64,000 nt of DNA from Adineta vaga (Eukaryota > Animalia > Rotifera), in the NCBI GenBank assembly GCA_021613535.1, contig CP075494.1, positions 1,798,001-1,862,000 on the forward strand, written 5' to 3'. Position 1 is the first letter of the stretch. Every line of letters begins with the position of its first letter. A program made the position numbers and the translations under genes. Under the pieces are notes generated by a model. It was not told the origin of the DNA, ran no database searches, and saw only the letters and a list, made by a program, of their open reading frames with translations. Of the stretch, positions 7,918 through 61,066 are shown one piece after another.

Positions 7918-9180
7918 AAATATAAATATATTATTAAAATAATATTTAGTAACAAAAAAAGTATCTCAAACAATAGTTAGATGCTCTGTCACAGTTGGCA
8001 TGAGAATTTCAGTTGAGATTAGAATGCGCGAAAAAAAATAGAAAAACAAAAGAATAAAACATAGAAATAAATAAATAAATAAATACAATAGATAATAGAT
8101 TTCAAAAGAAAGAAAGAAGAAAAAAACTTCTTTTTTCCACCATATTTCTTTTATTATTAAATAGCAGAAAAATAAACAGTAATAGAAAATTATGAATAAA
8201 CATCGTTTTAAATAAGGCATTCAATTTACCTTACCATTGATTTATAAAAAGGATGCTTTATACATTTGTTTTCAATATTTCACAATTTATATCTTAATGA
8301 TACTTTTGAAATCATATTCTATGTACATATAAATAAATAAAATTATGATAAAATTGTATTTCAAAATATCCCTATGTTAAAATGCATTGAATCATCATAA
8401 TCCTATTTTTTTTCTGCTCAAATTGAAATCTCGTTCATTCGAAACCGACATGAACACATGTAACTATGATAACGATAATTAACTTAGTAACTACATACAT
8501 CATTTGTTTTGTCTTTCTTTTAACTCACACCCACACCCTCAAGATTACGGAAAAAATTAGTGATGCAAACGAGTAGTTGCGAGGAAAACGATTTGCTAAG
8601 TTCAGCTTTTTGTGATGACATTTCGTTAATTTTTATATGTTCAATGTTTTCGGATAGGCACAACCGACATGAACGAGAATGTCTCACATCAGTCATGGTG
8701 AAAAGAGAACTCCATCATGATGGTGCTTTAAAGCGTCTTTCAGCTGTTAATAATCTTCTATAGATACTCAAATCAACCATTGACGTTCTTATCTTTATCC
8801 ACATGTACTTTGTCACGTTATTGTTTCCTAATAGTTTAATAGCATATCGGATTTTTCGTTTTTCTCATTGGTTAGAAAGTACACGAAGAGTTTTGAAAAG
8901 ATTAAAACAAGAATGATCACGATGACACCGTAGTTTTCACATACTTGTGTTTATGTCAATTTTACATCGTTTCTTTTCTCTCTTCCCGTGTGCAAATAAG
9001 CAAGCAACGACTCGATGAGTTAGACAAACAATGTACTATGCCCATGTGATATACATCAATGCAAAACAGCGAGAAAAAACAACTGTTGTTCGAAAAACTT
9101 CCTCAAGTTTTTCCACACATTAACATCTTTTGAATATCTTCTATAATTTCCATTATTTTTAGAAGTCACATTATACAACG

Positions 9181-20619: not shown

Positions 20620-20729
20620 AGGGTGTGGATGTAGGTGGCGATGTGGGTGTGGATACTACATCTTTCTAATAACCACCCACACCCACACACCCACACCCAC
20701 ACCCACACACACACACACACCCTCAAGAT

Positions 20730-26121: not shown

Positions 26122-26860
26122 ATCTAGAGGGTGATGGGTGAGACTAGCTGCCATTATCTAGATTTTACTTCTGCTAAGAAGATCATCAGATCTCTTATTA
26201 AGTTTTAATGATGAATGAAGAATATTATTATATGCAACTAAAAACAAATCAAGATTATTTTGAAGATTTCGAAAAGATTACCTGTATTAGCAAATAAGGG
26301 TGTTGGAATTGCTTTCGATCGTTGAAGTGGAAATGGATTATAGAATATATAATCTGTTTTGTGAGTTTGAAGATGGAGTAAGTTGAAGATCTTATTCTGT
26401 TGCAGTTTGTCGGTTGTCACATATTGGTTTGAAATAAGAAATTATTTGTTGATAAGTTGATGGTAAACTAAAAATACAGGTCTTATAGTTAAATAATTGT
26501 GTTCTGTATAATGTTGAGTTTTTGGTTAAATTTTTTGAAAGAAATATTATTTAAAGTAGGATAGAATGTTTGTCTAGATTTTTACAAGCAGTTGGTATAG
26601 TTGAAATAAATTTAATTAATAGAAGGATTTTATGGCATTTTGAATAATTGTATAGTTTGCTAAATACAAAGTTCAACTTGATTTTGTTTGATATTTGGTA
26701 AGAAATAATTATAGAGGTTTATTATCATATAATTTAATATTGATAAAATAATAATTGTTGTTGAAATTGTGTGTTGTAATTATGATGTAAGTGTACAATT
26801 TGGAAATAAGTCTAGTTTAATATGAAGATTAAGAATACATATGACTTCAAGCTAAAAAGA
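26122..26860 (-). mobile_element. Degenerate 3' end of an Athena/Terminon-like Penelope-like element with decayed hammerhead and telomeric junction
   Basis: Minus strand reads CTGATGA-TCTTCTtagcAGAAGT-AAAA-TCTAGA-TA-ATGGCAGCTAGTCTCACCCATCACCCTCTAGAT. It shares the ATGGCAGC..CTCAC tail with the copies at 46307 and 49980. The body is A/C-rich on the minus strand. Confidence 0.6.
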
Positions 26861-27550: not shown

Positions 27551-30229
27551 TTAAATTTTGTCTAAGATGCATTGTAGATGATTCTTCAGTGTAATGTCGT
27601 TGTTTGTTGTTGCCTTTTGAAGTGTATGTTTAAGTAGTCCTATTGCATAATCTTTGATTTTTGGAATGTTGCTGATCTTGTGGATATATTTGACAGATGT
27701 ATATATGGGTAGTCCGAGTGCAGCTCTAATTGCTTTATTCTGCATGATTTGTAAACGGTCCCATACTTTTTGATCAGCAGTAAGGAGAATAGGATGTCCA
27801 TAGATGATAACTGTGCGTACAATTGATTTGAAAATATTTATCATCGTCTTGTTGTTGGGTTCATATGCTGTTCTCGAAATATATCGAAGTAGAACGATCC
27901 GAGGAGCAATCTTGCTTTCAATATGTTCGAGATGTGCTCGCCATTTTAATCTTTTGTCTATAATTACACCCAAGTAACGTGTGGAATCCAGTGGTTTGAT
28001 GATGGTGTCTTCAACTTTAACTTTCACTGAATTCTTGTAGTGTTTTCTTGGATGTATGCTGAAGTGTATCAGCTCTGTCTTAGTTGGTTGAAGTTTTAAT
28101 TTCCATGACTTGCACCAACTTTCGAATGCATCTATGGATTGTTGTAATCTGGTGTTAAGATTTGTTAAGGTGTTGCCAGATGTCCATAATGCAGTGTCGT
28201 CGGCGAACAACCCATGTTCTGTATGAGTTGGTATTCCATTCATCGAATCTGCCGTATACATAATATAAAGTAATGGTGATAACGGAGATCCTTGTGGTGT
28301 ACCGCTCTTCAGATTAAACGGACGTGATAATATATTTTCGATTTCAATTGCAGCCGTTCTATTGCTTAAGAATGAGATCAGATAGTTGATGATGAAACAG
28401 GGAAGACGTAGATCATTAAGCTTGTATATCAAACCATCGTGCCATACCGAATCAAATGCTGCTTTGATGTCGAAAAGAATGACAGCTGAGTGACGTCGTC
28501 TAAGTTGTCCTGCAGCGTATCTTTCTAATCGCACGATGTTGTATATAGTGCTTTTACCTGGTCTAAATCCGGCTTGATGTTGTGGTAAGATGTTACGTCG
28601 TTCAAGTTCGAGCATTAAACGTTGTTTGATTATTTTCTCCAATAGTTTGCCTAAGCAACTAAGGAGACTAATCGGTCGATAACTAGACGGTTGTTGTTTG
28701 TCCTTCTTTGTCTTCAATAGAAGAATAATATTAGCCTTTTTCCACATTGCTGGAATATAACCTTGTTTCAAAATTGCATTGAACAGATTTGTTAGATGCT
28801 GTACAAGTAACTTTGAATTATTTTTTAAACACCTGTTATGGATGTTTTCCGGACCTGTGGAGCTATTTCGAAGTTGTCTTATATGATAGTTGACTTCTTC
28901 TACTTTAGTTAACTTCCACCTAGATGTGTTTGTTGAGGTTATATTACCATTCTTGACTTTGTTTGCTTGACTTGTTACTTGATCATGAAATGGCAATGTA
29001 TCAGCAGTAACAGAGTAGACTTCATTTTCGAAGTAATCTGCAAATAAGTCTGCTTTCTCCTTTTCTTACGTTGCTGTCGTGTAATTGTATTTCATGATGC
29101 TAGTAAAGGTTTGCTTGATCTGTTTGTTGTGGAACTTGCGAACCGTTAACCAAACTTTTCCAGAATACATGTTCTTATGACATAGAGAAGACATTAACTT
29201 GTTGAAGTTGTTTCTCCTGTCGTTACGTAGTGAATTTGTAAGTAAGACTTTGGAGTTGTAGTATAGATGTTTATCTATGTTGTTTCCAGTCTTCTTCCAT
29301 TTTCGATATGCTTGATGTTTTTGTTTTATCAGGCTTATCGATACTTCACTTGGTGTATACGTTCGGATCATCTACTTTGTTTGTGGAACGGCTTCTTTTG
29401 TTGCTTTTAGTATACTAGTGGTAATGAATGTAGTATATTCTTCTATGTCTGCTGCTGAATCTTAATGATGATCATTTTTCCACAGCATCAGTTGTTGATC
29501 TAACTTGCATCTAAATTTTGACCATTTTGCTGCTTTGAAATTAAATGAAATTCTTGACGAAACCGGTTTGGGTTCAGCTCCGCAAGGAATATCAAATGTT
29601 AATGGTTTATGGCCATTTAATGCACCGATTGTTGGATGAGTCTCAACGTTTGATATGAATGAAAGAAGTGGTTGACTTGTTAAAACCCAATCTAGTTTAA
29701 CTTCATAATCATTCTTTTCGAAAGTTGGACTATCATCGTCGACACAATCAATAAGACCATCTTTAAATAATTCTTGCAGCTGTCTTCCTCTAGCATTAGC
29801 TTGTTGTGATCCCATATTATATAATGTTGCATTAAGATCACCCATGATAATGCAGTTGTTGTTGACGTTATAAAGTTCGTGGAATAAGTTGATATCGATC
29901 TTTGCTTTTGGTGGTACGTAAATGGAGGATATTAGTATTGATTTGAATGATTTAGTTCGAATCTCTACTGCTATCGCTTCATTCTTGCAGGTTGTTTTGT
30001 TTAGTACTTCTTGACACTTGATATGTTGTTTCACTGCTATTAATACTCCGCCCCCAGCTTGTCCTATTCGATCATTTCTGAAGATGTTATAACCAAAAAG
30101 AGTGAATGGTCTTTCGCTCTTTAGATTAGTTTCATTAACAGAGATAATATCGTATTTGGAGAATCTGGCTAGGAGTTCATCTTTGTGTTTCGTAATTGAG
30201 TTAATGTTGATATGGCATAAACTAAGCAT
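27551..30229 (-). pseudogene. LINE ORF2: AP endonuclease plus reverse transcriptase with three in-frame stops
   Basis: APE motifs HININS, NET, GDLNA, LDW; RT motifs YRPISLLS, QAGFRPG, DIKAAFDSVWH, GTPQGSPLSP, FADD, YLG. The ORF pieces are all in one frame, with stops at 29462-64, 29372-74 and 29066-68. Confidence 0.92.
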
Positions 30230-37995: not shown

Positions 37996-40900
37996 ATGAA
38001 TTTATTTCAAATTTTTCTTTTAATTGTCTGTATTGAAAATGTGATCATTGCACAACTATATGTGACCAAAACCGAAGATTTAGAAGACATGAATGGTTAT
38101 GATTGTCTACTTTTTGATCAAATTCAATTCTGTCGACGACCAAATATAAATGAATCCTTTGATCGTAATCGATCTAAATGTGATCATAATGGAAAACCTA
38201 TTATGTTCAATTATTTAGCTGAATATAATATAACTGGTGAGCAAGTACTTCAATGGAGTACAAGTATTGACAAAGCTGATCAATATGCACGCTGGTATCG
38301 ATCATATGAACGGAAATCAAATCAATTATTTATTTGTAATTGTTCAATACCTGGAACATTTGGATCATTTTGTGAATATAAATATGAATTCTATAACAAA
38401 GATTCTACATTTCAATCCACAGTTGAAAAAGTTTTTCTCAATAGACGACATTATCGTCCATATGATCAAATCTATGGTGATATATTATGTTATGAAACAT
38501 TATTTCCATGTGATTATGGATTACTTTGTTTGGATTGGAGAGATATATGTGATGGTCGACAACAATGTATGGATGGAATTGATGAAGAAAACTGCGATAA
38601 ACTCGAATTTGATGAATGTGAATTTGATGAATATCGATGTGCAAATGGTATGTGTATTCCAGATGATTATTTTCTTGATGGTAAGAATTTTCGTTTGAAT
38701 ATGTTCAAAAATAATTCCGAAAATTTTGGATTTTATCCGAAAGTTATGTGTACTGCAGAAAGTGTGCAAGAAAGATGAATTACACAGGCTAATCTTGAGG
38801 GTGAGGGTGTATAAGGGGTACATTCACTGTATAGCTTATCGAGACTGTTAAGGATCTGATTATACAGTGCTGCCAGTAATAGTAAAAATGTGTCAAATTA
38901 TACATGTTTTGAGTAATTTTTAGGAAAAATCCTTTTTTCAATCCCTGTGGCTCTCCCTCAATGGCGATCTGGACAAAAAATGTCAGTTTATTCGATATCT
39001 CAGTTGTTTCTACGAGGATCATTGCCATTTTCAAACACGGTCTAAATACTGATGACACCGAACTACTTAGGGCATTCTAAAAGTAGTGACGGAGGTAGTT
39101 TTTTTCCTTCGTAACGGATACAAAAAAGTTGTTTTTTTCACTAATAGATAGAGCGTGTTTTGCTCTATCTTTCTATGCTATTTGATCACTATTAAACTGT
39201 GATCATAATAATAAAATTATGATAGGATTTGTTTCTGTCGCATATTCGCTAGTAGCATGAGTGCTCGTGAGTATTTTCGAAATAACTTTTGGTAGAAATA
39301 GGATAGAGAACTGCGGTTTTCACCGTTGGAAAGACAAGACGAAAACGCATTGAACAGTATACTATCGATTTTTCTATTATGATTTCTGACGATTTTTTAT
39401 TCAATTTTCTAACCGGCGGAAAAACGCTTACTTCATGAAAAAAGACGAAAAGATAAAAAATTTGTTAGAATATCGTAGTAGAGGTGTCTCAAGAATAGGT
39501 ATTATTTATAAATAATTGTATTAAATAGATGAGTCTGTCGCAGTCTGTAAATATCCAATTAGGAGTTTGAATCTGAACACGATTAATGAAAATTTACTGC
39601 ATACAACTTATGGAATAGTGTCCCTCTTTAAAACAACAGCTGACACCTCATAAAAAGTAGATTGAAAAAGTTAGTAGTACGTAGCTCGATGCGTCTTCAT
39701 CTCCTCTTTCCAACGGTGAAAAGCGCAGCTCTCTATGTAATTTCCATCAAAAGTTATTCCAAAAATACTCACAAGCATTCATGTTCGTGCTACCAGCGAA
39801 TATGCGACAGAAACAAATCCTATCATAATTTTATTATTATGATCACAGTTTAATAGTGATCAAATAGCATAGAAAGATAGAGCAAAACACGCTCTATCTA
39901 TTAGTGAAAAAAACAACTTTTTTGTATCCGTTATGAAGGAAAAAAACTACCTCCGTCACTACTTTTGGAATGCCCTAAGTATGTAGGAGAATTCCATTAC
40001 GATTTGACGCTTTTATTGAAAGTTATCCTATGAACAGTCAGACACACTGACCGATTCTAATTAGTAGTGCATCCACTTTTTGAGTACACAAATCTGTTCT
40101 TCTTATTAAAGGAGATATCGATTGTATGGATCAAACCGATGAAAAAGATGTTCCATCTGATATTTCTTGCTTTTGGCAATTATCTCCGTTCAACTGTGAT
40201 GAACGTATTTGTGGTCAACAAAATTTATTTTCATGTGGCGATGGTCAATGTATCAAAGAATCAGAGCGACATTTATTTCTTGCTCCCAGTCAATATTTGA
40301 ATTATAAATCTGATCGGAATCAAAATTGTCTTAGTTTACGTCAATTGTACTTCAGATGTGAAACATCAACACCTGTGCACATGTGGACATTGCCATCAGG
40401 TATGTGTTGGTGGTTCGAAGAAAAAACAAACATATTTCATCCATATAACAGTTGTAAACAGAATTGTAATAGTGAAATTATTTGTGATTTTTTACTAAGA
40501 TGTTTATTATCTGAAGGTCAACATATTAATTGTCAATGTCATTCAACATATACATGTATGCCAATTATTGAAAAGAATTGCCCTCGATTTATTGCTTATC
40601 CAAATCGTCCATTATTAACTCCTTATCTGACATTAATATATGGACGAGATGATTCCGGGCGTGGAATTCAAGAGCTGTTTGGATATGTACTCACTGGTCG
40701 TATTAAATGTCGAGGATATCACATTCATTTTAAAGAAAATATAACAATTATGAATTTTACGGATCTTATTTTTCATCCAATTCGTTTAGAACATTTCTTA
40801 TGTTCATCATCGAAGAGTATTCGAAATAATTCCAAATTAACTCGATATTATGATATAAATTGTTATAATGACTCCAAAACATTTACAGGATATTCATATC

Positions 40901-44943: not shown

Positions 44944-46306
44944 CTAGAGACTATTATAACGTGTTCTTCTTCGAATACGAAAAATGATGAATGCAATAGT
45001 TGTGATTAATGCGATCACTAAGCCTGCAATCGAAAGACCCAATGTGGTATGATCACTTTTCCGTGTGAATGGAGTCGATGTCTCACTATACGAATTGATC
45101 GTATTTGTTGGATTGATAGCCACTTTTGTTTGATTCTTCGTCGAAATGGGATAGAACGGTGGTAAAATAATAGCTGGTAACTTTTGCATGTCTGGTAATT
45201 TGTCGAATTTTAAACACACATATAGAGGACAATCATTTTCAATAGCACCCATAACATATGAACTATAACCATCTAGACATTGTTTTGTAGCTGAAGGAAG
45301 TATCACATTTCCTTGAGAGCACGAAAACATGCCACCATAATGAGGTAAATTTCTCGTCTCAAATACTTGATCAGCTAAACATACTATTAAATCGGAAGTT
45401 ACTTGGACTGTTTTAAACTGATCGTTGGGACACTTATGTATTCCAGTGATTGGATTCACTCGTACTGATGTATACGAACCACCGTAAACATATCGGTTAG
45501 AAACCGACAGAAGTCCTGTTAATGAATCGCGTAACATCATTTTGCTATTGCAAACAAATAAGTTTATTTCACGTCGACCAACACCATCAGGAATATCTTT
45601 GCAGCATTTTCTTGAGTACATGTCGCAACGTCGACATTCTTCTCTATATACAGTTTCCGTTTGAACTGATTGATGAATGAGATATTGATTGAAACCGGAT
45701 GGACATTCAAACGTTTGTGTATAGAAATTCTTCATATTATATTGACCGCATCTCCTTAAGTCCCAATACGAACATTGAAGTCAAACCGCACAGATTAAAT
45801 TTACTGTTGACTTACTGTGCTAAACGTCGATCTTCAGTGCAAGTACGAATAAAACCTCCAAACTGAGCATTGGCTTCAGGCGGTGCACAAGAACTATCAT
45901 CGACATTCGCAATCCAATTGAATGACGGCGAACTTCAATTCATACATCCGTTGTACACATTCATTTGAATATATGTGTCAATAGCTTGAGCAATCTTCTC
46001 GCGCACACATAACAATGCAGTTTCAGATAGTTCGGAAATTTTATTTGAAACAATGTTGATTGTTATATTCTCTACCGCACGTCGAACAATAACCGGATCA
46101 GTTTCCACTGTTGTTTGCCAAGTATTCATCGAATTTTCCAGTAAAGATACTTTGCCACCTTTCGTCTGAATCATCTTGCGTTTGATAGTCTTTTTCAACC
46201 CTTCGGTACTGTTATCGATCGAGGTTGAACTGTAAGCGAATTTGCCGGATATACTAAACGTGCTAAAGAACGATGCTTCAGCTGCAGCATGGTAACTACG
46301 TTTAGT
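44944..46306 (-). pseudogene. Perforin-2/MPEG1-like MACPF protein, 5'-truncated
   Basis: MACPF end (TKGG..WQTTV); MPEG1-like GCMN*SSPSFNWIANVDDSSC..FGGFIRTC; P2-like YGGSY..VNPITG..CP and YGGMFSC..GN; C-terminal TM. Stop at 45935-37; intron at about 45754-45815; N-terminus replaced at the telomeric/hammerhead junction. Confidence 0.8.
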
Positions 46307-48200
46307 TTGAGGGTGAGTCAAGCTGCCATAACGCGTTTCGACCTTTTTCAAGGGTCTCATCAGATGGCTTAATTCTGAATATGATTACGAAAGACTTAGT
46401 CTACTTAAAGCTGAAATCAGATAGTTTTTGTCTTACCTATTTGTTGAAGAGCTGTGACAGATCATGGATGTCATGGTAGTTAAGAATTAAGCGTGTTGAA
46501 CTTGGAATGTCTTTGTTTGTATTTTGTTGTTTTGCGACGTAGGGTTTGTATGTATTTGTCTGGATAGACTTGCTACTGTTGGAGTATTGTTGGCTTGACT
46601 GGTGTTGAGATGTATATAGCTTGTATTGTAGTGAAGAATAAAGTGACTTGTATAGGTTATAGCGGTGTATTTGTTAAGAATATGTGCTATTATGTTTGCA
46701 ATAAGATGAATGATACTTACTTATAGGCAACCTAAGAAATGAATGTTATAATGAAAAAGTGCTTCGTATTTATAGGATGAGTTGAGAATGTGAACTTTGA
46801 TCTATGATACTGGCATTTATGTGTGGGCAAGAATTTCATCTCGTGTTTTACGTGATGAATGTTTGGAAGTTGGTATTTTAAGCAAAGGCGTATATTGTTT
46901 GTTTCGTTTAATAGCATTTGAATATGTGAAAAAATGGAGAAAGAATGTCTTCAGGAGGCGTATGAAAGTATGTTCTTGCTACGTGAAATTATTCTTATAG
47001 AGAAATTCACTTTTTTTATGGAATGAGTGCATACAGGAAAATTTTGTGTAAGAAAAGGTAAAGCAGATATCATGGAAGAAAGAGAAAGATAGTGATTAAC
47101 TCTACATACATGTGTTTATTGATTTGTCTGCACTTGATTGATTTTTGTCATTTTTCATTGTGTGAAAGACTGATTCAATATATATATATATCAAAGATGT
47201 GAAAGTATTGAATAATACATTTGTTTAGAAATGACATCCTAAGTATTGGAGTAAAACATTAAAATCATCAAAAACAAGTAAGTAAAGACATACATTCTAA
47301 ATGTTTTCTTTCAGATGCATTATATGGTATATTTTCGTTTATTAAATTCAAGTATGAACTGGTTGAATGCAAATCAATTGATATGTATGATTCAAGTTGT
47401 TTATGTGATAGTTATAAAATATCTAGAAGGAAAAGAAGAAAAATCAGATAATTTCTTTTTATTTTATATAAGCAACAGAAAAATGATGATATGGGATGGA
47501 GAAACTTCAGATAAATCGATTTATACTTGAGCAATATTATAAATCAATAGGAAATAAGGAAATTTTGAAATAAGCGTTTATCCTTTGGTTTTTAAATTAT
47601 TCATTAGAATCTATTGTTTGTTACGAACGATTCTCGATGTTGAATCATGTGGCTAGCCGATGCTGTTTGTCATAATTTGCCCGTTCAATCATATGCAATC
47701 GACGGTTCTCTATAGCATCATATACTATGTTTTGCCATTCTGATGTTGATTGCATATATCTATTCTTTAATAAAAATTTCTTTCGTTTAGTTTGTATTAT
47801 TGTACTCAAGTTTTCAATTTTGCTATGACTAGCAAGAATGGCATGATTAATGATATTATTCTTTAAAGTATTTAATTTATCAACTTCATATGTTAAAGAA
47901 TCACTAATTATAGTTGATTTCATAGTTTCATTCCATTTTTGTATATCTTTATCAATATTATTGATCATTTCATGAACTAAACTGGATGTTGCTTGTAATG
48001 ATGTTGATGAAAGACGTTTTTCTAACAAAGCAATATCTTCTTCAATCATCATTTGTTCTTTTGTTGCACGCCATATATGTGTTGCCAAAGTGATCTGTAA
48101 TTGATATAAATTGAAAAGACATTCAATTCAATAAATAATACAGTTTAATATATATTTACGTGATTCTTGTTTGGGTTGACATTGTAAAAATTTTGAATTA
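46307..48200 (-). mobile_element. Deleted Athena/Terminon-like retroelement: coiled-coil ORF fragment plus 3' hammerhead and telomeric end
   Basis: ORF 47645-48088 is a coiled-coil resembling Athena ORF1 (family assignment from recall). The 3' end carries a 62-nt GT-AG intron-like segment (46436-46375), a hammerhead, and the tail ACTCACCCTCAA. Confidence 0.6.
46325..46368 (-). ncRNA. Minimal type I hammerhead ribozyme
   Basis: GCCAT-CTGATGA-GACCCTTgaaaAAGGTC-GAAA-CGCG-TT-ATGGC: intact core, stem I GCCAT/ATGGC, palindromic CGCG stem III typical of Penelope-like-element hammerheads. Confidence 0.88.
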
Positions 48201-48412
48201 ATTGATGAATCAGTGTGAAGCTAGCACCACGAAGCTAGCACCGCGAAACTAAGAGTTTTGCGAAAACGAATTCCCGTCGATAAAAAAGAGTCTATTCGAT
48301 GCAGAATTTGATTCTGAGTCGAATGGTGACATTTTTATTCACGGAAAAACGATAGGAAAAAAGTTTTCTTCGATCTTTATTTGTCTTCTATATGTGTATA
48401 TGCGTCATTGTA

Positions 48413-48729
48413 CGACATTCGGCACGCAATTTCTCTGCACAAAATGAACTCCCGTCCATGAAAAAGAGTCTGTTCGACGCAAAATTCGATTCTGCATCGA
48501 ATGACGGTACTTTCATTCACGGGAAAACGAATGAACAAATTTTATTCGAATTTTTCTTTTACATATGTAAGTATGAGAGGAAAATAAAAATCGAGGTAAG
48601 CTTCGTCCTGATCGTTTTCCCGTGAATGAAAGTACCGTCATTCGATGCAGAATCGAATTTTGCGTCGAACAGACTCTTTTTCATGGACGGGAATTCATTT
48701 TGTGCAGAGAAATTGCGTGCCGAATGTCG
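48413..48729. mobile_element. MITE with about 118-bp near-perfect TIRs
   Basis: CGACATTCGGCACGCAATTTCTC.. mirrored; flanked by TA (48411-12, 48730-31). A diverged half-copy of the same family lies at about 48265-48360. Confidence 0.9.
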
Positions 48730-48731
48730 TA

Positions 48732-49972
48732 TTAGGTTGTCAACAAAGTTTTGGCGTTTTTTTCAAAAATTTTATTTTTGTTTTTTCACTTCAAAAGTAC
48801 AACTAGTTCTCAGATATATATTGACCATTACTATCTACCACTTGTCGCCAACGTTCTGGCAGAGACATGATCCCGCGCTCGTAGAAGTCTTGGGATTTTT
48901 CATCGAAGAACTTGACAAGCTCCATTTTGACACCGCTTTCGTCTTTGAACTTTTTATCACGTAAATCATTCGAAAGAGAACGAAACAAATGGTAGTCTGT
49001 TGGAGCCAAGTCCGGAGAATAAGGTGGATGAGGAACCGTAATACAGCCAAGCTTCAATAATTTTTCACGAGTCGACTTTGCAATGTGTGGTCTTGCGTTA
49101 TCATGTAAAAAATAAACTCGATCCTGCTTTCCTTTGAGTTTCTCTGCAACCCGATCCAATTGTTGACAGTACAGATCAGCAGTGATGGTGTAACCATTTG
49201 GTAGAACTTACCAGTGGATAACTCCTTTGATACCCCACCAGACGCTCAGCATCAATTTCTTGGGATGGAGATCAGCCTTCGGTGTTGCTACGCCGGTTTG
49301 ACCAGCGCTCAGCCACTGACGTCGACGCGTGTAGTTAACATACAACACCCACTTCTCATCACCAGTAATCAGATTGGATAACCATTGGTAGTTGCGGTGA
49401 GATGTGATTAAATCCATACATGCATCAACTCTCTGTTGCAGCTGATGTGCCGATAATTCATGAGGTATCCATACCCCATATTTCCAGGTCTTGCCTAATT
49501 CGTTCAGATGTTTTTCCACCGTAGTATGAGAGCACCCGACCTGCTCTGCTAAACACCGTAAAGTCAGTCGAGGATCTTCTTCGATAAGCTGCTTTAAAAA
49601 GTCCACATCCACTTCCATTGGTCTACCAGATCGAGGTAAGTCGTCGAGTTCTAAATCGCCATTCTTGAAATGATTGAACCAACGTTGCGCGGTACGAGTG
49701 GAGACTAGACCCTGACCCATCGTGCCGCATATGTTGCTGGCTGCTTCCGTTGCTTTGTGCCCCAAACGAAATTCATGAAGTAAAAGCACCCGAATCTCTC
49801 AATGAGAAAGATTTATTTCTGATTCGACATCAACGTCCATATCGATGATTTTTTTATCATTCGAAAGACGTTCATGTCCTATATATATACACTTAGTATG
49901 GAAACTTCTAGAACTTTCTAGGTTATTCTACAAGATTTTAGAAAAAACGACAAAACTTTGTTGACAACCCAA
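48732..49972 (-). mobile_element. Mariner (DD34D) transposon, full length, transposase inactivated
   Basis: 31-bp TIRs TTAGGTTGTCAACAAAGTTTTGGCGTTTTTT (2 mismatches); TA TSDs; transposase 49840-48803 with WIPHEL, GDEKW, HDNARPH and YSPDLAPTD; in-frame stops at codon 14 and at 49208-10. Confidence 0.95.
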
Positions 49973-49979
49973 TAGATAA

Positions 49980-50024
49980 GCCATCTGATGAGATTCTTTA
50001 GTAGGAATCGAAAATAGTCATGGC
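49980..50024 (+). ncRNA. Minimal type I hammerhead ribozyme followed by reverse telomeric repeats
   Basis: GCCAT-CTGATGA-GATTCtttagtagGAATC-GAAA-ATAG-TC-ATGGC, then AGCGGACTCACACCCACACCCAC (to 50046). GUC cleavage triplet. Confidence 0.82.
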
Positions 50025-50229
50025 AGCGGACTCACACCCACACCCACGACTATCAAAAATACAGAGATATAAGCTATTCGTTTTTATTAATTAATTTCTT
50101 AGAGATGCATTGAGTCAAAGATATCTATATAGAAACGATTTATCCTTATTAAAATACGGCATGCGTGTTTTTAGGATTATACTTGGATACTAAAATAATT
50201 GTATCAAACCTCAAAAGTTGTTTATTATG

Positions 50230-51245
50230 TTAATTTCTTTGAAATAATGAGTACAATTCTGTACTCTTCAAAACAGTGTCATTTTTCGATCCACCAATAA
50301 CTAACACTTTTCCATTCGTTAATACGGATGCAGTGTGTCTTTTTCGTATATCATTCATACTATTAGTAATTGTCCAAATCGCTGTTGATGGATCATACAA
50401 CTCAGCACTATTTAGATCACCATCATAATTAGTTCCACCAGTAACTAACACTTTTCCATTTATTAATACGGATGCTGTGTGGTCTGCCCGTGCATTATTC
50501 ATATCACCAGTAGTTGTCCAAAGACCTGTTGATGGATCATACAACTCAGCACTTTTTAGAACACCACGACCGTATCCAGCAGTGACTAATACTTTTCCAT
50601 TTGTTAGCACGGATGCTGTATGCTGATATCGTACATAATTCATACTACCAGTTGTTGTCCAAAGGCCTGTTGATAAATCATACAACTCAGCACTGCTTAA
50701 AGCACTACCACGACCATTATTTCCGCCAGTAATTAGTACTTTTCCATTTGTTAATACGGATGCTGTATGATCAAATCGTGCATCAGTCATGTTATTAGTG
50801 GTTGCCCAAGTCCCTGTTAATGGATTATACAACTCAACACTGTTCAGAGAAATATTCTGATTATGTCCAGCGCTAACTAATACTTTTCCATTTGTTAACA
50901 CGGATGCTGTGTGCCCGTATCGTTCATATTTCATACTACCAGTTGTTGTCCAAGTCTCTGTTGATGGATCATACAATTCAGTATTGTTTAAATAACGAGT
51001 ATTATCTCCACCAATAACTAATACTTTCCCATTTGTTAATACGGATGCTACATGCCTCCAGCGTTGATATTTCATACTAGCAGTTGTTGTCCAACGGCCT
51101 GTTGATGGATCATACAACTCAGCAGTGCTTAAATATGAACCAGGATTGCCAGCAAAGCCACCAGTAACTAGTACTTTTCCATTTGTTAACACGGATGCTG
51201 TATGATAATGTCGTATATTTATCATGCTACTCGCATTAGTCCAAC
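50230..51245 (-). CDS. Seven-bladed Kelch/galactose-oxidase-type beta-propeller, terminal exon
   Basis: Seven highly similar R..HTASVLTNGKVLVTGG..L.SAELYDPSTG.W repeats; TTTAG acceptor at 51246-47 (phase 1). Confidence 0.88.
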
Positions 51246-52284
51246 CTAAATAGAAACATTTGAATGTATTCATTCTAGGAAAAATATATCTGGATGAACT
51301 CCCAAGATTCTCTGATCATGTATGAAATATTTTAGATCTTGTAAAAAGTGTTACAATTCTTTCAAGAAGTTGTTCATGAGGAGGTACGACAGTAAGCCTT
51401 AAACTTTTTCCTAAAGAATCGCACGCGTGAATAAAGAATAAATTAGATTTGCGTTTTCTATCTGTTGTTACAGGATTTATACAAACTAATGCACTTTCGA
51501 TTATATACAGTGGCTTTCTTTAATAGTTTTAAATTACCATAAAATCTATCTCAATCGTCCAAGTCTTAAAAAAGCAATCAAAATTCTTTCGAAGTATCTT
51601 AAGGGCCCCCTCACCCTATGGTATACATTTTTGGATTTTGGTTGCTCTGGCTGTTTTGAACCTTCAGATTATACAGTGCTGCTGAATTTTTTATCAGATA
51701 TTTACCATATGTCGGGCATCTTGCACTATAAATTTCAGCCCTTCCTATTCAGTCTAGCTTGAGATACAGTGGCAACAGATAACCTCACTGTATTTGCCAA
51801 ATTTCTCCGTCGTTCGGAATGTTGAAGAATTCGGACTGGTCTCAAAATGTAGCCCTGAGCTTGCGCTACAATCCTACAGACTCCAATCTTTCTCGTCATG
51901 TTCTTTTTTATTTCAACTCAATCCCATCTAATAAAAAAAATAGTCAACGGTAGTAAAAAACGAGTTATTTTCTCAGTTTTTACTAGATAGAATTGAGTTG
52001 AAATAAAAAAGAACATGACGAGAAAGATTGGAGTCTGTAGGATTGTGCTTCAGCCGACCTGAACTCAACATATGACGATGGAATCTGTTGCCATATCTCA
52101 AAACTGAATAGGAATGAAAAAGCTATATCTGATAAATAAATAAGCTATAAAAATAAACATTTCGCTAATATAGAAATAAAAATCAAAATCAATAAGAGAC
52201 TTTATGAGTTGTCTAGTTATAATTATAATATAGACGGACATTCAACAGTCATATATGACTTATAAAATAAATAGATATTAATAC

Positions 52285-54148: not shown

Positions 54149-57100
54149 TTACCTTAGAAGAATAAAAATGAAATAACGAATCATTACTCTAATCATGGCT
54201 TGTATTGAAATGAGGCAGTATCGTAAGGATGCTTCTTTTTTATGTCTGGTATTCAGATGGCATTGTAAGCTGCATTTCTCCAAATCGAAAACAGCACAGT
54301 CTAATGCTTTGATAATTGGAAACTCGATATTGGTCTTATTGTTTTTAACGTACGTATATCAGTCCGCGAGAAATATAATTTTCACGGAATAAAACAGACA
54401 AATGAGCACGTGATGCGCGCAAGACTAAAGCTTTTTTTATTATCGTTCTAAAATAGAGTTTTCTGTTACCTTAATTCTTAAATCGTCAAATTAACGGTAG
54501 ATGAAAGATTCGCGTCACCGCATCTTGAGAGTGTGTATGTGTATGTGTGGGTGTGACGGTGAGGCTCTTTTGTTGAGTGACACCCACACCCACACCCGCC
54601 CTCAAGATGGGTTGTGATCGTTGGATTATTAATCTTAAGAATGTCATTGTTCCTAAACGAAATTTTATGTCATTTCTATGGGAGCGTACAGATATCAAAG
54701 CTAAAAAGTCGAAAATATATATTCCGTTCAACTATCATCTACATATGCCAATTAGTCCGCTCGATAATTCTCTTCCTCTAACCAATAATTCTTCATCGCA
54801 AACAGAGAATCACGATAATCTAACTTATTCACATGATGATTGATATAAACTTAATATTTACAATGTTTAAAAATAGGTTTCTATCGTGACTGGTCAATTC
54901 GTCGCAGAATAAATTAGCTGTAACAAGATTAACAAAATATGCAGATAGAGGGGGAGAGATAAACCTCTCATGAAAATGATTATGTTTGTAAAAAATAAAC
55001 AACTAGCGGGCATACCTGCTGCAAATTAAGATATACTCACATGATAAAACATCGCAAGTTGACAAATGATAGGAAATGTAGTTGTGAATATTCCTAACAC
55101 TGAAACTGTGTCAGATTCCTTCTTTGGATTTAGTTCTACAGAAGTATTTATTAAGATTTTTGACTAATCTGGATTTATTCTCAGAATCACACCCTCACAT
55201 CCACTCACCCTTCAGGTCTGCTGTAAATCTCATTCACACCTTTATCTTACACCCTTACTCTAAGAAAACTGGAATTCTAGAAGACTATTTTGGGTTTTGT
55301 ACCAGTGTACTGAATCTGAATAGCTTCAACAGATCATCGTTTTATTCTTTTTGAGTTTAGTAAACCATCCAGGTCGAAGCGGGTACATCGGATCTTGTCG
55401 GTTCACATGACACATAATCCCTGATCAATCCGATCAATAACCGGTGATAGGAACGTGTCGGATTCTACAAAGATGTAGAAGTTCCGTTGATCGGATTTTC
55501 TTTGTATCGTATGAAACAGATCCGACCGGATCAGCTGCTGGTGCACATCGGAACTAATCAGAAACTCGTGGATATATATAATTGAACTGATTAGCATACT
55601 GTCAAAGAGATAAAATGGTCTGATGTGATTGAAATTTTATTCCGATACATTTTTTGGAACAAAGTTAAATCTAATGATTAACACGTTGATATCTCAATCA
55701 TGTATGTCAAGAATTACTAAATAGAAGTAAGTATGCAAATAGTTGCTGCTTATCGAAATAAATATAGCTTTAACAACTTTCATACAACAAAAAACCTTTC
55801 AAAATATATTTGACTTTTGAGTAATGATAAAAAATAAGCAAATTGGTTTTTTGTTGTGATAATCTTACAAAATTTCTGATAACTGAAATGAACTTCCTAT
55901 TGCTTTATGTAGATAAAGACCACTGTATACTCTATTGAACATTGGACTATGATCACAATAACAAACTGATAAATATAAATGATGGATTTCTTGTTGGTTG
56001 CTAGAAATTGATGGCGGTTGACTAGTCTTAATAATGCATTAAAACTTATTAAGCGCTCATAAAAACAAAGATGAAATTCATCGTTAATCTTAAACAATGA
56101 TATTTAAAATCAAATGAGAAACTTCCTTTTTCGATCAGTTTCGAAGAAATTTCCAATGAGTTGTTATTTAAATATTTGATAATGCTATGATATCTTATGA
56201 CGAGTTGCTTGTGGACACCTATTGTAATTGTGTTGAGGGTGTGGGTAATACACTTCTCTTCAACTACACCCACACCCATCTTTACTTTTTTAAATATATT
56301 AAAATTAATAAATGAAAATGTTTATCGTATTTCTATGAAAACATACGCTTGTATTCATTCAATAAATATTCTTAATATATTATTAACAATGGAAAAAGAA
56401 CGAATAATTTTAAATACATCATCTTTATCATTTTTCTCAATAGTTCATAATTGTTCAGGAATATTAGAACATTATCTTATTGAATATCTTCAACAAATTC
56501 ATATTGAAAATCAAATGGAAAAGATTTTAAAAGAAAAATATTTTATTTCAATTAAAATTATATAAATATTCCAATTTACATTATTCTGTTAATAATGCAA
56601 TAGAAATACTGATAGAAGATCATTACTCATTATTTTTCGAGAAATTTATTATTTATTTCTGTAATAATTTATGTTTAGAATTGATATTTGATGATTATGT
56701 AGATATACTTTAGGATCTTTCAAAATCTAATATCTATTGATAAGGAGAGATTTATAGATGCACTTTGTAAAGGTAGTCAAAAAACAAGCAATATATTATA
56801 TTTAGGTTTATGTTCTTCTTTTAGTGAACTTACAGATGAATTTGTTAAAATATTGATAAATGTTATGGAGAAGAAAATAAAACTGATAGACAAGCATTTG
56901 AATTTTATTTTAGTAAAATCAAAACAATATCAAATGAAAATGTTATAGAAGATTTATTCAAAGAATTTCGATTAATTTTTTTATTTAAAATCGATATTTT
57001 CTATTCGAATTTTAGAATTCTTTGTTTGTTTTGTAGAACAAGATTTCATTTCTATGTTAGAAGTTATAGATCATTTATTGATTGTAACTAATTATAAATT

Positions 57101-61000: not shown

Positions 61001-61066
61001 ATCTTGAGGGTGTGGGTGATGGTTTTGGCCTTTTTTTTATCTCACCCACACCCACACCCTCAAGAT
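61001..61066. repeat. Perfect mini telomeric palindrome ATCTTGAGGGTGTGGGTG..CACCCACACCCTCAAGAT
   Basis: 18-bp perfect inverted repeat around a short unique spacer; no TSD. Type example of the dispersed family. Confidence 0.9.

Follow-up and report, generated by a model that had tools for sequence, protein, structure and literature searches.

A head-to-head pair of hammerhead- and telomere-tailed retroelement ends beside a truncated MACPF gene in chromosome 5 of Adineta vaga

The 64-kb stretch of Adineta vaga DNA analysed here (the window; C5:1,798,001-1,862,000 of a 100.8-Mb assembly in 6 contigs/chromosomes) contains, between a truncated MACPF gene and an intact kelch-repeat gene, a segment of 3.7 kb that is bordered on each side by a hammerhead ribozyme motif and a short telomere-like tail. 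Such ends are known from Athena/Terminon elements, which are Penelope-like elements (PLEs) without endonuclease; in their RNAs, a 3′ hammerhead is followed by reverse-complement telomere repeats, and these RNAs attach to G-rich 3′ ends that are exposed (PMC8557442 and PMC6431247, which summarise Gladyshev & Arkhipova 2007 and Arkhipova et al. 2017). The locus, 46307-50047 in window coordinates, is set in transposon-rich surroundings at a distance of 1.84 Mb from the left end of chromosome 5, and about a dozen interstitial telomere-repeat tracts (TGTGGG/CCCACA repeats) occur in the window. The features of the locus and its flanks are given below from left to right, where R1 denotes a covariance model made from an alignment of 24 distinct genomic hammerhead copies, ORF an open reading frame, UTR an untranslated region and MITE a miniature inverted-repeat transposable element.

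44944-46308, minus strand: 3′ part of a MACPF (MPEG1-like) gene; covers positions 118-214 of the 214 of the Pfam MACPF profile
46307-46318, minus strand: left tail, TTGAGGGTGAGT on the plus strand and ACTCACCCTCAA on the minus strand; read from the sequence
46319-46372, minus strand: left hammerhead; pattern match, R1 68.1 bits, family covariation
46373-47644, minus strand: 3′ UTR of the left retroelement, between ORF and hammerhead as in a related copy on chromosome 3 (L070, 4464-6530)
47645-48091, minus strand: last exon, an orphan protein with an intact 147-aa ORF; multi-copy ORF family
48092-48208, minus strand: inferred 66-nt intron (48092-48157, GTAAAT...TTACAG) and the final 17 codons of the exon upstream (48158-48208); signals for splicing visible in the sequence, codons translated alone
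48209-48731, no strand assigned: foldback MITE; more than 50 genomic matches, the best at 90-92% identity
48730-49974, minus strand: mariner (element 48732-49972); terminal inverted repeats, TA on both sides, transposase matches
49975-50029, plus strand: right hammerhead and linker; pattern match, R1 60.0 bits
50030-50047, plus strand: right tail, ACTCACACCCACACCCAC, that is ACTCAC(ACCCAC)2; read from the sequence
50048-51273, minus strand: intact six-bladed kelch-repeat gene (ORF 50230-51273; Pfam Kelch_1 3.6e-64) with its 3′ flank

The preliminary description of this DNA had placed two hammerhead/telomere edges in inverted orientation around the segment, and direct reading of the sequence bore this out, with the right edge ending at 50047 rather than at 50046. 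The left edge reads UUAAGCCAU-CUGAUGAG-ACCCUUGAAAAAGGUC-GAAA-CGCGUU-AUGGCAGCUUG-ACTCACCCTCAA on the minus strand, and the right edge reads GAUAAGCCAU-CUGAUGAG-AUUCUUUAGUAGGAAUC-GAAA-AUAGUC-AUGGCAGCGG-ACTCACACCCACACCCAC on the plus strand. The tails of both elements point outward, and the ends lie 3.7 kb apart. Both copies carry the conserved core CUGAUGAG...CGAAA (CUGAUGA...GAAA, with H at the cleavage site) and a stem I of 5 bp, which is GCCAU/AUGGC in the left copy. Stem II has 4 bp in the left copy (GACC/GGUC) and 5 bp in the right copy (GAUUC/GAAUC), the stem-III loops are CGCG and AUAG, and the cleavage bases are U and C, respectively. The pattern CTGATGAG..GAAA..ATGG matched exactly twice in the window, against 0.00 matches expected, and in the genome the strict pattern gave 29 matches against none with the reversed pattern as control. 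With R1 the next-best match in the window, after these two, reached only 17.7 bits. With the Rfam model Hammerhead_1, the left copy reached 19.5 bits, which is below the gathering score of 34, and the right hammerhead gave no match. Folding energies (z-scores of -0.6 and -1.5) were not significant for RNAs so short, and covariation was therefore used as the evidence for the stems: in the alignment of 24 copies, four of the five stem-II pairs covary, and 94.7% of the family cells are paired, compared with 14-48% when the 3′ partners are slid. Both ends are thereby predicted to be type-I hammerheads of the minimal PLE variant. In the dimer-forming type, a palindromic tetraloop closes a stem III of 1 bp; here the left stem-III loop is palindromic and the right one is not, the corresponding loops being CGCG in L073 and L074 and CUAG in L045, relatives from elsewhere in the genome; the right copy has probably decayed.

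A genome scan with R1 found 132 hammerhead copies, and in nearly every one of them a short linker leads downstream to ACTCAC or ACACAC and then to (ACCCAC)n; all 29 strict pattern matches have this arrangement. The left tail, ACTCACCCTCAA, is a minimal version of this arrangement without a full telomere repeat and has the same form as in L064; further hammerhead ends, such as those of L064, L067 and L048, show the left linker, the tail and the CCCTCAA(GAT) boundary as well. Taken together, these sequence features support the view that both edges are genuine 3′ termini of the Athena/Terminon type. The inverted repeat that the two ends have in common is limited to the 22-nt catalytic core. Moreover, the nearest relatives of the left end are at C6:13307236 and C5:999835 (88% identity), and those of the right end are at C5:792073 (87%) and C6:3846772 (82%). 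As the relatives differ and only the core is shared, the two ends belong to different subfamilies, as the preliminary description had held.

The genomic context of the family bears on how unusual the pair is. Along the chromosome arms, the hammerhead ends are not biased towards either orientation (38 plus and 36 minus near left chromosome ends, 26 plus and 30 minus near right ones), and neighbouring hammerheads within 30 kb of each other form seven tail-inward and eight tail-outward pairs. Among the scored matches, no tail-outward pair within 5 kb other than 46307-50047 is telomere-tailed. Units as short as the right copy occur elsewhere: tandem spacings of 88-217 nt between hammerheads are common in the genome, and in L042 a unit that starts 13 nt upstream of its hammerhead directly adjoins the preceding tail.

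Upstream of the left hammerhead lies the only retroelement body of the locus, which extends over 1.9 kb and is truncated on its 5′ side at 48208. Its 3′ UTR measures 1.27 kb, and for the part from 46400 to 47390 the genome holds no further match. Each of the two exon pieces of the element's ORF was translated, and searched, on its own. The 147-aa orphan ORF gave no Pfam match, and its only outside relative in a protein search is an unnamed protein of Adineta ricciae with 55% identity, so that no annotation marks the ORF as Athena. Within the genome it belongs to a family of at least 17 copies, and a hammerhead on the same strand follows 0.5-1.4 kb downstream in at least eight of them; this linkage identifies the orphan ORF as the 3′-terminal ORF of hammerhead-ended elements. 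The chromosome 3 copy L070, which is 72% identical, has the same layout and an upstream ORF of 314 aa. A separate feature beside that copy is an intact DDE_3 transposase ORF of 581 aa at L070 8050-9795 (C3:652049-653794, plus strand).

On its outer side, the left tail adjoins the MACPF gene within its coding sequence. The remaining fragment has coding blocks at 44944-45735 and 45935-46308 and a transmembrane helix near its C-terminus. A paralog with 76% identity lies 490 kb away at C5:1.354 Mb and has about 640 bp more of 5′ coding sequence, and the homology between the two genes ends at 46308, exactly at the left tail. The earlier reading that this MPEG1-like gene had lost its 5′ half therefore stands, with the cut placed at 46308; the missing half was found nowhere else in the assembly, nor beside any reciprocal scar. 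The TT at 46307-46308 fits the gene and the tail (TTGAGGG) equally, which amounts to a microhomology of 2 nt. On the other side, the right tail ends in the 3′ flank of the kelch gene, of which the part 50048-50220 has no other copy in the genome. Exact-protein look-ups with the kelch ORF and with the MACPF exon, aimed at another haplotype or assembly, gave no match. No direct repeat or target-site duplication (TSD) was found across the two outer junctions, and we infer that the element ends attached to a free DNA end at both flanks.

Two further observations concern the MACPF genes. An open frame of 141 aa (45935-46360, minus strand) starts at an AUG within the CUGAUGA of the left hammerhead and continues in frame through the tail into the truncated gene; this frame is probably due to chance, and the cleavage site separates its AUG from the gene. 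Just past the 3′ end of the paralog there is a small telomere-like scar, TTGAGGGTGGGTGTGAGTG (L002 1340-1360; C5:1354218-1354238).

The interior of the segment differs from what had been supposed. The preliminary description had proposed two Athena bodies, each extended from one side of a break and fused 5′ to 5′, and this was not borne out: the left copy comprises 1.9 kb without a reverse transcriptase, the right copy only about 73 nt, and 1.77 kb of the 3.7 kb consists of two DNA transposons unrelated to Athena. The first is the foldback MITE, whose internal arms of 120 nt are 99% complementary. Its left terminus, ATCAGTGTGAAGCTAGCACC, is intact, and its right arm is short by about 200 nt in comparison with a full copy of 727 nt in L030, which is flanked by the 9-bp direct repeat TTCACATAG. 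A sub-threshold Rfam match to MIR161 at 48491-48654, on both strands, was rejected as the hairpin of this MITE. The second is a Tc1/mariner DNA transposon of 1.24 kb at 48732-49972, with 39-nt terminal inverted repeats that are 90% complementary. Its transposase is recognized by the Pfam profiles HTH_48 (7.8e-17), Transposase_1 (1.1e-13) and DDE_3, and the reading frame is broken into two ORFs; at least 14 full-length relatives with 94-96% identity occur in the genome. The TA at the start of the mariner marks the point at which the MITE is cut, and just past the TA at the mariner's other end the right hammerhead begins, with only 2-8 nt of element sequence between them; in the relatives L073 and L074 of the right copy, the upstream sequence is different. 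Since an independent insertion of the mariner on an older junction would be a coincidence, we prefer a deletion or recombination at the mariner, and the original inner junction was probably erased in this way.

We consider it likely that the locus is a head-to-head junction of two 5′-truncated copies of endonuclease-less PLEs of the Athena/Terminon type. The anatomy, the family membership of both ends, the truncation of the gene, the lack of a TSD and the nesting of the transposons are shown by the data; priming at broken ends, and the order of the events, we infer as follows. Each copy would have been made by reverse transcription from the 3′ end of its RNA (hammerhead, linker, ACTCAC and telomere-complement repeats), primed by an exposed chromosomal 3′ end. 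The left copy may have been primed inside the MACPF gene through the 2-nt TT/AA overlap, in which the DNA end ...AGTTT-3′ would overlap the AA of ...CCCUCAA; this geometry fits priming close to the 3′ terminus of the RNA. Synthesis would then yield GAGGGTGAGT, followed by the antisense hammerhead, the 3′ UTR, the last exon and the intron, and would reach 17 codons into the upstream exon, over 1.9 kb in all. For the right copy, priming may have taken place 185 nt past the stop codon of the kelch gene, and about 73 nt of this copy survive. The two extended ends would have been joined later or brought together by rearrangement, with loss of the 5′ half of the MACPF gene. Subsequently, the foldback MITE would have inserted into the left copy and the mariner into the MITE, and a mariner-linked deletion or recombination would have erased the inner junction, so that the right end of the mariner now adjoins the right hammerhead.

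Several observations weigh against this interpretation. The right tail passes into unique DNA without the boundary CCCTCAAGAT that is described below. The mariner occupies the inner junction exactly, so that no point of 5′-to-5′ fusion survives, and the inner 5′ ends adjoin the MITE and the mariner and have no telomere-repeat caps, unlike typical truncated Terminons (PMC6431247). Given 132 unoriented ends concentrated in subtelomeres, we estimate that about 0.5 tail-outward pairs within 3.7 kb would be expected by chance. Finally, neither a reverse transcriptase nor any other protein that defines Athena was found by Pfam among the ORFs of 46307-50047. Such an absence is expected, because the copies are 5′-truncated, and the assignment to Athena accordingly rests on the structure of the 3′ ends and on the linkage between the orphan ORF and the hammerhead.

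The search for a reverse transcriptase was also made around related copies. Pfam found none in the ORFs neighbouring the copies L070 and L071, and a genome scan with RVT_1 was dominated by long interspersed nuclear elements (LINEs) and long terminal repeat (LTR) elements; for a link of the orphan ORF family to an Athena reverse transcriptase it gave weak matches only (for example C1:18028798, 1.7 kb upstream of a hammerhead). In the window, a strong RVT_1 match (139 bits) occurs within a 504-aa open frame at 27959-28705, minus strand (C5:1825959-1826705); it is probably a LINE or LTR element unrelated to the hammerhead pair.

As a special case of the junction of two Athena-type copies, a single double-strand break may have been seeded on both sides, extended by two different Athena RNAs and rejoined with loss of DNA. 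We regard this as a tentative possibility. The outward tails have the polarity expected of the two sides of a break, and at least six small scars in the window have the same polarity, with a G-rich arm followed 10-50 nt away by a C-rich arm; these scars are intergenic, and none of them splits a gene. In addition, there are published observations of neotelomeres and of Athena fragments at breakpoints (PMC13564844). Against a single break, there is no sign that the flanks were ever contiguous: the paralogous MACPF locus shares the gene body only, the kelch flank is unique and the 5′ half of the MACPF gene is gone. The lack of orientation bias of hammerhead ends along the arms indicates that the region has been scrambled, and the place where a rejoining would be visible is taken by the mariner.

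Alternatively, two unrelated healed ends, each attached at its own time to a different chromosome end or fragment, may have met later through an end-to-end fusion, an inversion or ectopic recombination of mariner copies, of which one lay in a MITE and the other just upstream of a hammerhead; we consider this possible but somewhat doubtful. The mariner exactly fills the space from the truncated MITE to the truncated Athena end, which recombination or deletion at mariner copies would explain, whereas an independent insertion would need a precise coincidence. The 94-96% identical mariner copies could have served as substrates for recombination, and near the hammerheads at C1:16335274 and C1:16335368 there is another of them, about 100-200 nt away. 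Subtelomeres have also been described as prone to rearrangement (PMC8494291). Juxtaposition requires more events than a single break. Nevertheless, because the ends are unoriented and chance would be expected to give about 0.5 such pairs, two separately healed ends that were joined later fit the data as well as one break does.

That the pair was created by the assembly, through a false join or a haplotype switch in the mariner, appears improbable. The join does coincide exactly with a multi-copy repeat, and uncollapsed haplotigs and structural variants reportedly persist in the subtelomeres of the assembly (PMC8494291). On the other hand, a repeat of 1.2 kb is easily spanned by the long reads of chromosome-level assemblies, the sequence contains no Ns, and the junctions between the hammerheads and the flanks lie outside the repeat and stand alone either way.

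An origin from one Penelope-type (GIY-YIG) insertion that carried an inverted pseudo-LTR can be set aside as highly improbable: inverted 5′-truncated copies are indeed common in endonuclease-bearing PLEs (PMC8557442) and the genome holds such inverted pairs (L023 and L027), but those are near-perfect palindromes about 400 nt apart without telomere tails, whereas the arms of the locus share 22 nt only, differ in stems, linkers and tails, and come with no TSD, no GIY-YIG or reverse transcriptase ORF and a loss of target DNA. One element with an inverted pseudo-LTR and a TSD, which the preliminary description had named as the finding that would overturn its proposal, is thus excluded by the dissimilar arms and the missing TSD, and the genome searches found no further copy of the complete 3.7-kb unit that has both ends and a TSD.

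The junction of the two Athena-type copies also bears on the many smaller telomere-like scars of this genome. At many hammerhead ends, and at many scars of pure telomere repeats as well, the outer boundary before unique DNA is CCCTCAAGAT or a truncated form of it. The 12-mer CACCCTCAAGAT occurs 1,152 times in the genome compared with two occurrences of the reversed control, equally on both strands and in chromosome cores as well. At the left junction (46307-46318), the truncated form CCCTCAA is directly linked to Athena-specific sequence, namely the ACTCAC linker and the hammerhead, and because of this physical linkage the sequences favour an Athena-type RNA as one template of the scar boundaries; telomerase RNA is also a possible template. 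The template would be whichever of the two, an Athena/Terminon transcript or telomerase RNA, contains or ends in CCCUCAAGAU. A wider proposal is that both 3′ ends of internal breaks prime on the 3′ ends of Athena/Terminon (or telomerase) RNAs and that the resulting cDNAs are then joined. We think this twin priming unlikely. If it did take place, the more than 1,100 copies of CACCCTCAAGAT, which are spread over subtelomeres and chromosome cores, would be its short products, and at 46307-50047 we would have one of its rare long products, which reveals the template RNA.

In the window itself, CACCCTCAAGAT forms the sharp outer edge of telomere-like tracts at 8536-8547, 20715-20729, 54598-54609 and 61051-61063, and the same boundary is found on the other strand at 38792-38801 and 61001-61010. 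Many of the tracts are inverted pairs of a G-rich and a C-rich arm, with a spacer of 10-50 nt that often holds a GGATATAC- or GTATATA-like sequence.

Compared with known Athena/Terminon elements, the locus shares the 3′ hammerhead followed by short reverse-complement telomere repeats, which are (ACACCC)n or (TCACCC)n in the known elements, as well as the 5′ truncation of copies, intron-bearing accessory ORFs that do not encode reverse transcriptase, the subtelomeric setting and the presence of host genes between copies. Subtelomeric Athena/Terminon arrays with host genes caught between the copies have been described (PMC6431247). The differences are the position 1.84 Mb inside chromosome 5, the head-to-head arrangement in place of the head-to-tail arrays that known elements form at chromosome ends, the uncapped inner ends, the lack of a reverse transcriptase and the left tail without a full telomere repeat. 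Endonuclease-bearing PLEs with inverted pseudo-LTRs resemble the locus in the inverted orientation of their hammerheads; they differ in their near-identical arms, spacing of about 400 nt and lack of telomere tails, and in having a TSD and a GIY-YIG domain.

LINE-1 elements reportedly insert at DNA breaks and at dysfunctional telomeres independently of their endonuclease, as Morrish et al. are said to have described in 2002 and 2007. Such insertions would resemble the locus in the priming of reverse transcription by an existing DNA 3′ end, the absence of a TSD, the deletion of target DNA and the short microhomology, and they would differ in the clade of the reverse transcriptase, in a poly(A) instead of a telomere-like tail and in that usually one end is primed.

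The closest precedent comes from A. vaga itself. In experimental lines, telomere repeats and Athena fragments were found at deletion breakpoints and were interpreted as transient neotelomeres that leave scars, and a break-healing route by which Athena could reach non-terminal sites has already been proposed from these lines (PMC13564844). Interstitial telomere repeats have likewise been read as marks of old fusions (PMC8494291). As in the experimental lines, telomere repeats and Athena fragments here stand at the edge of a broken or deleted segment; those cases, however, were seen as soft-clipped reads in recent laboratory lines, whereas the present one is a fixed, old, two-sided structure of the reference with later transposons. 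What is new here is the head-to-head geometry at a fixed internal site, together with a minimal tail welded to the middle of a gene. We regard the locus as a real scar of chromosome-end healing by endonuclease-less retroelements that was later remodelled by DNA transposons, and not as a new mechanism, which this locus alone does not establish. It would provide a clean and datable case of an endonuclease-less retroelement end joined to the middle of a host gene deep in a chromosome, and it supports the published idea that breaks in bdelloids can be stabilised by additions of telomere-like or Athena sequence, which later become interstitial scars. In this interpretation as a healed end, the locus also illustrates the loss of a gene as a cost of repair and the later accumulation of DNA transposons at such sites. 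The locus is useful chiefly as an anchor for the genome-wide scar motif, since a telomere-like boundary is here physically linked to Athena-specific sequence.

Some further hammerhead sequences were found in the course of the analysis. At 26125-26200, minus strand, the window holds a third, decayed 3′ end of the Athena type, which consists of ATCTAGAGGGTGATGGGTGA, then GACTAGCTGCCAT and then a degenerate hammerhead (R1 17.7 bits, E 0.014). Elsewhere in the genome, tandem arrays of hammerheads with a period of 216-217 nt were seen at C3:20277175-20277656, C4:2712-2978, C4:63610-63877 and C3:2174630-2174896, and they may represent mini-units, each made up of a hammerhead and a tail, or else a retrozyme-like repeat; tandems with periods of 88-193 nt occur at other places in the genome as well.

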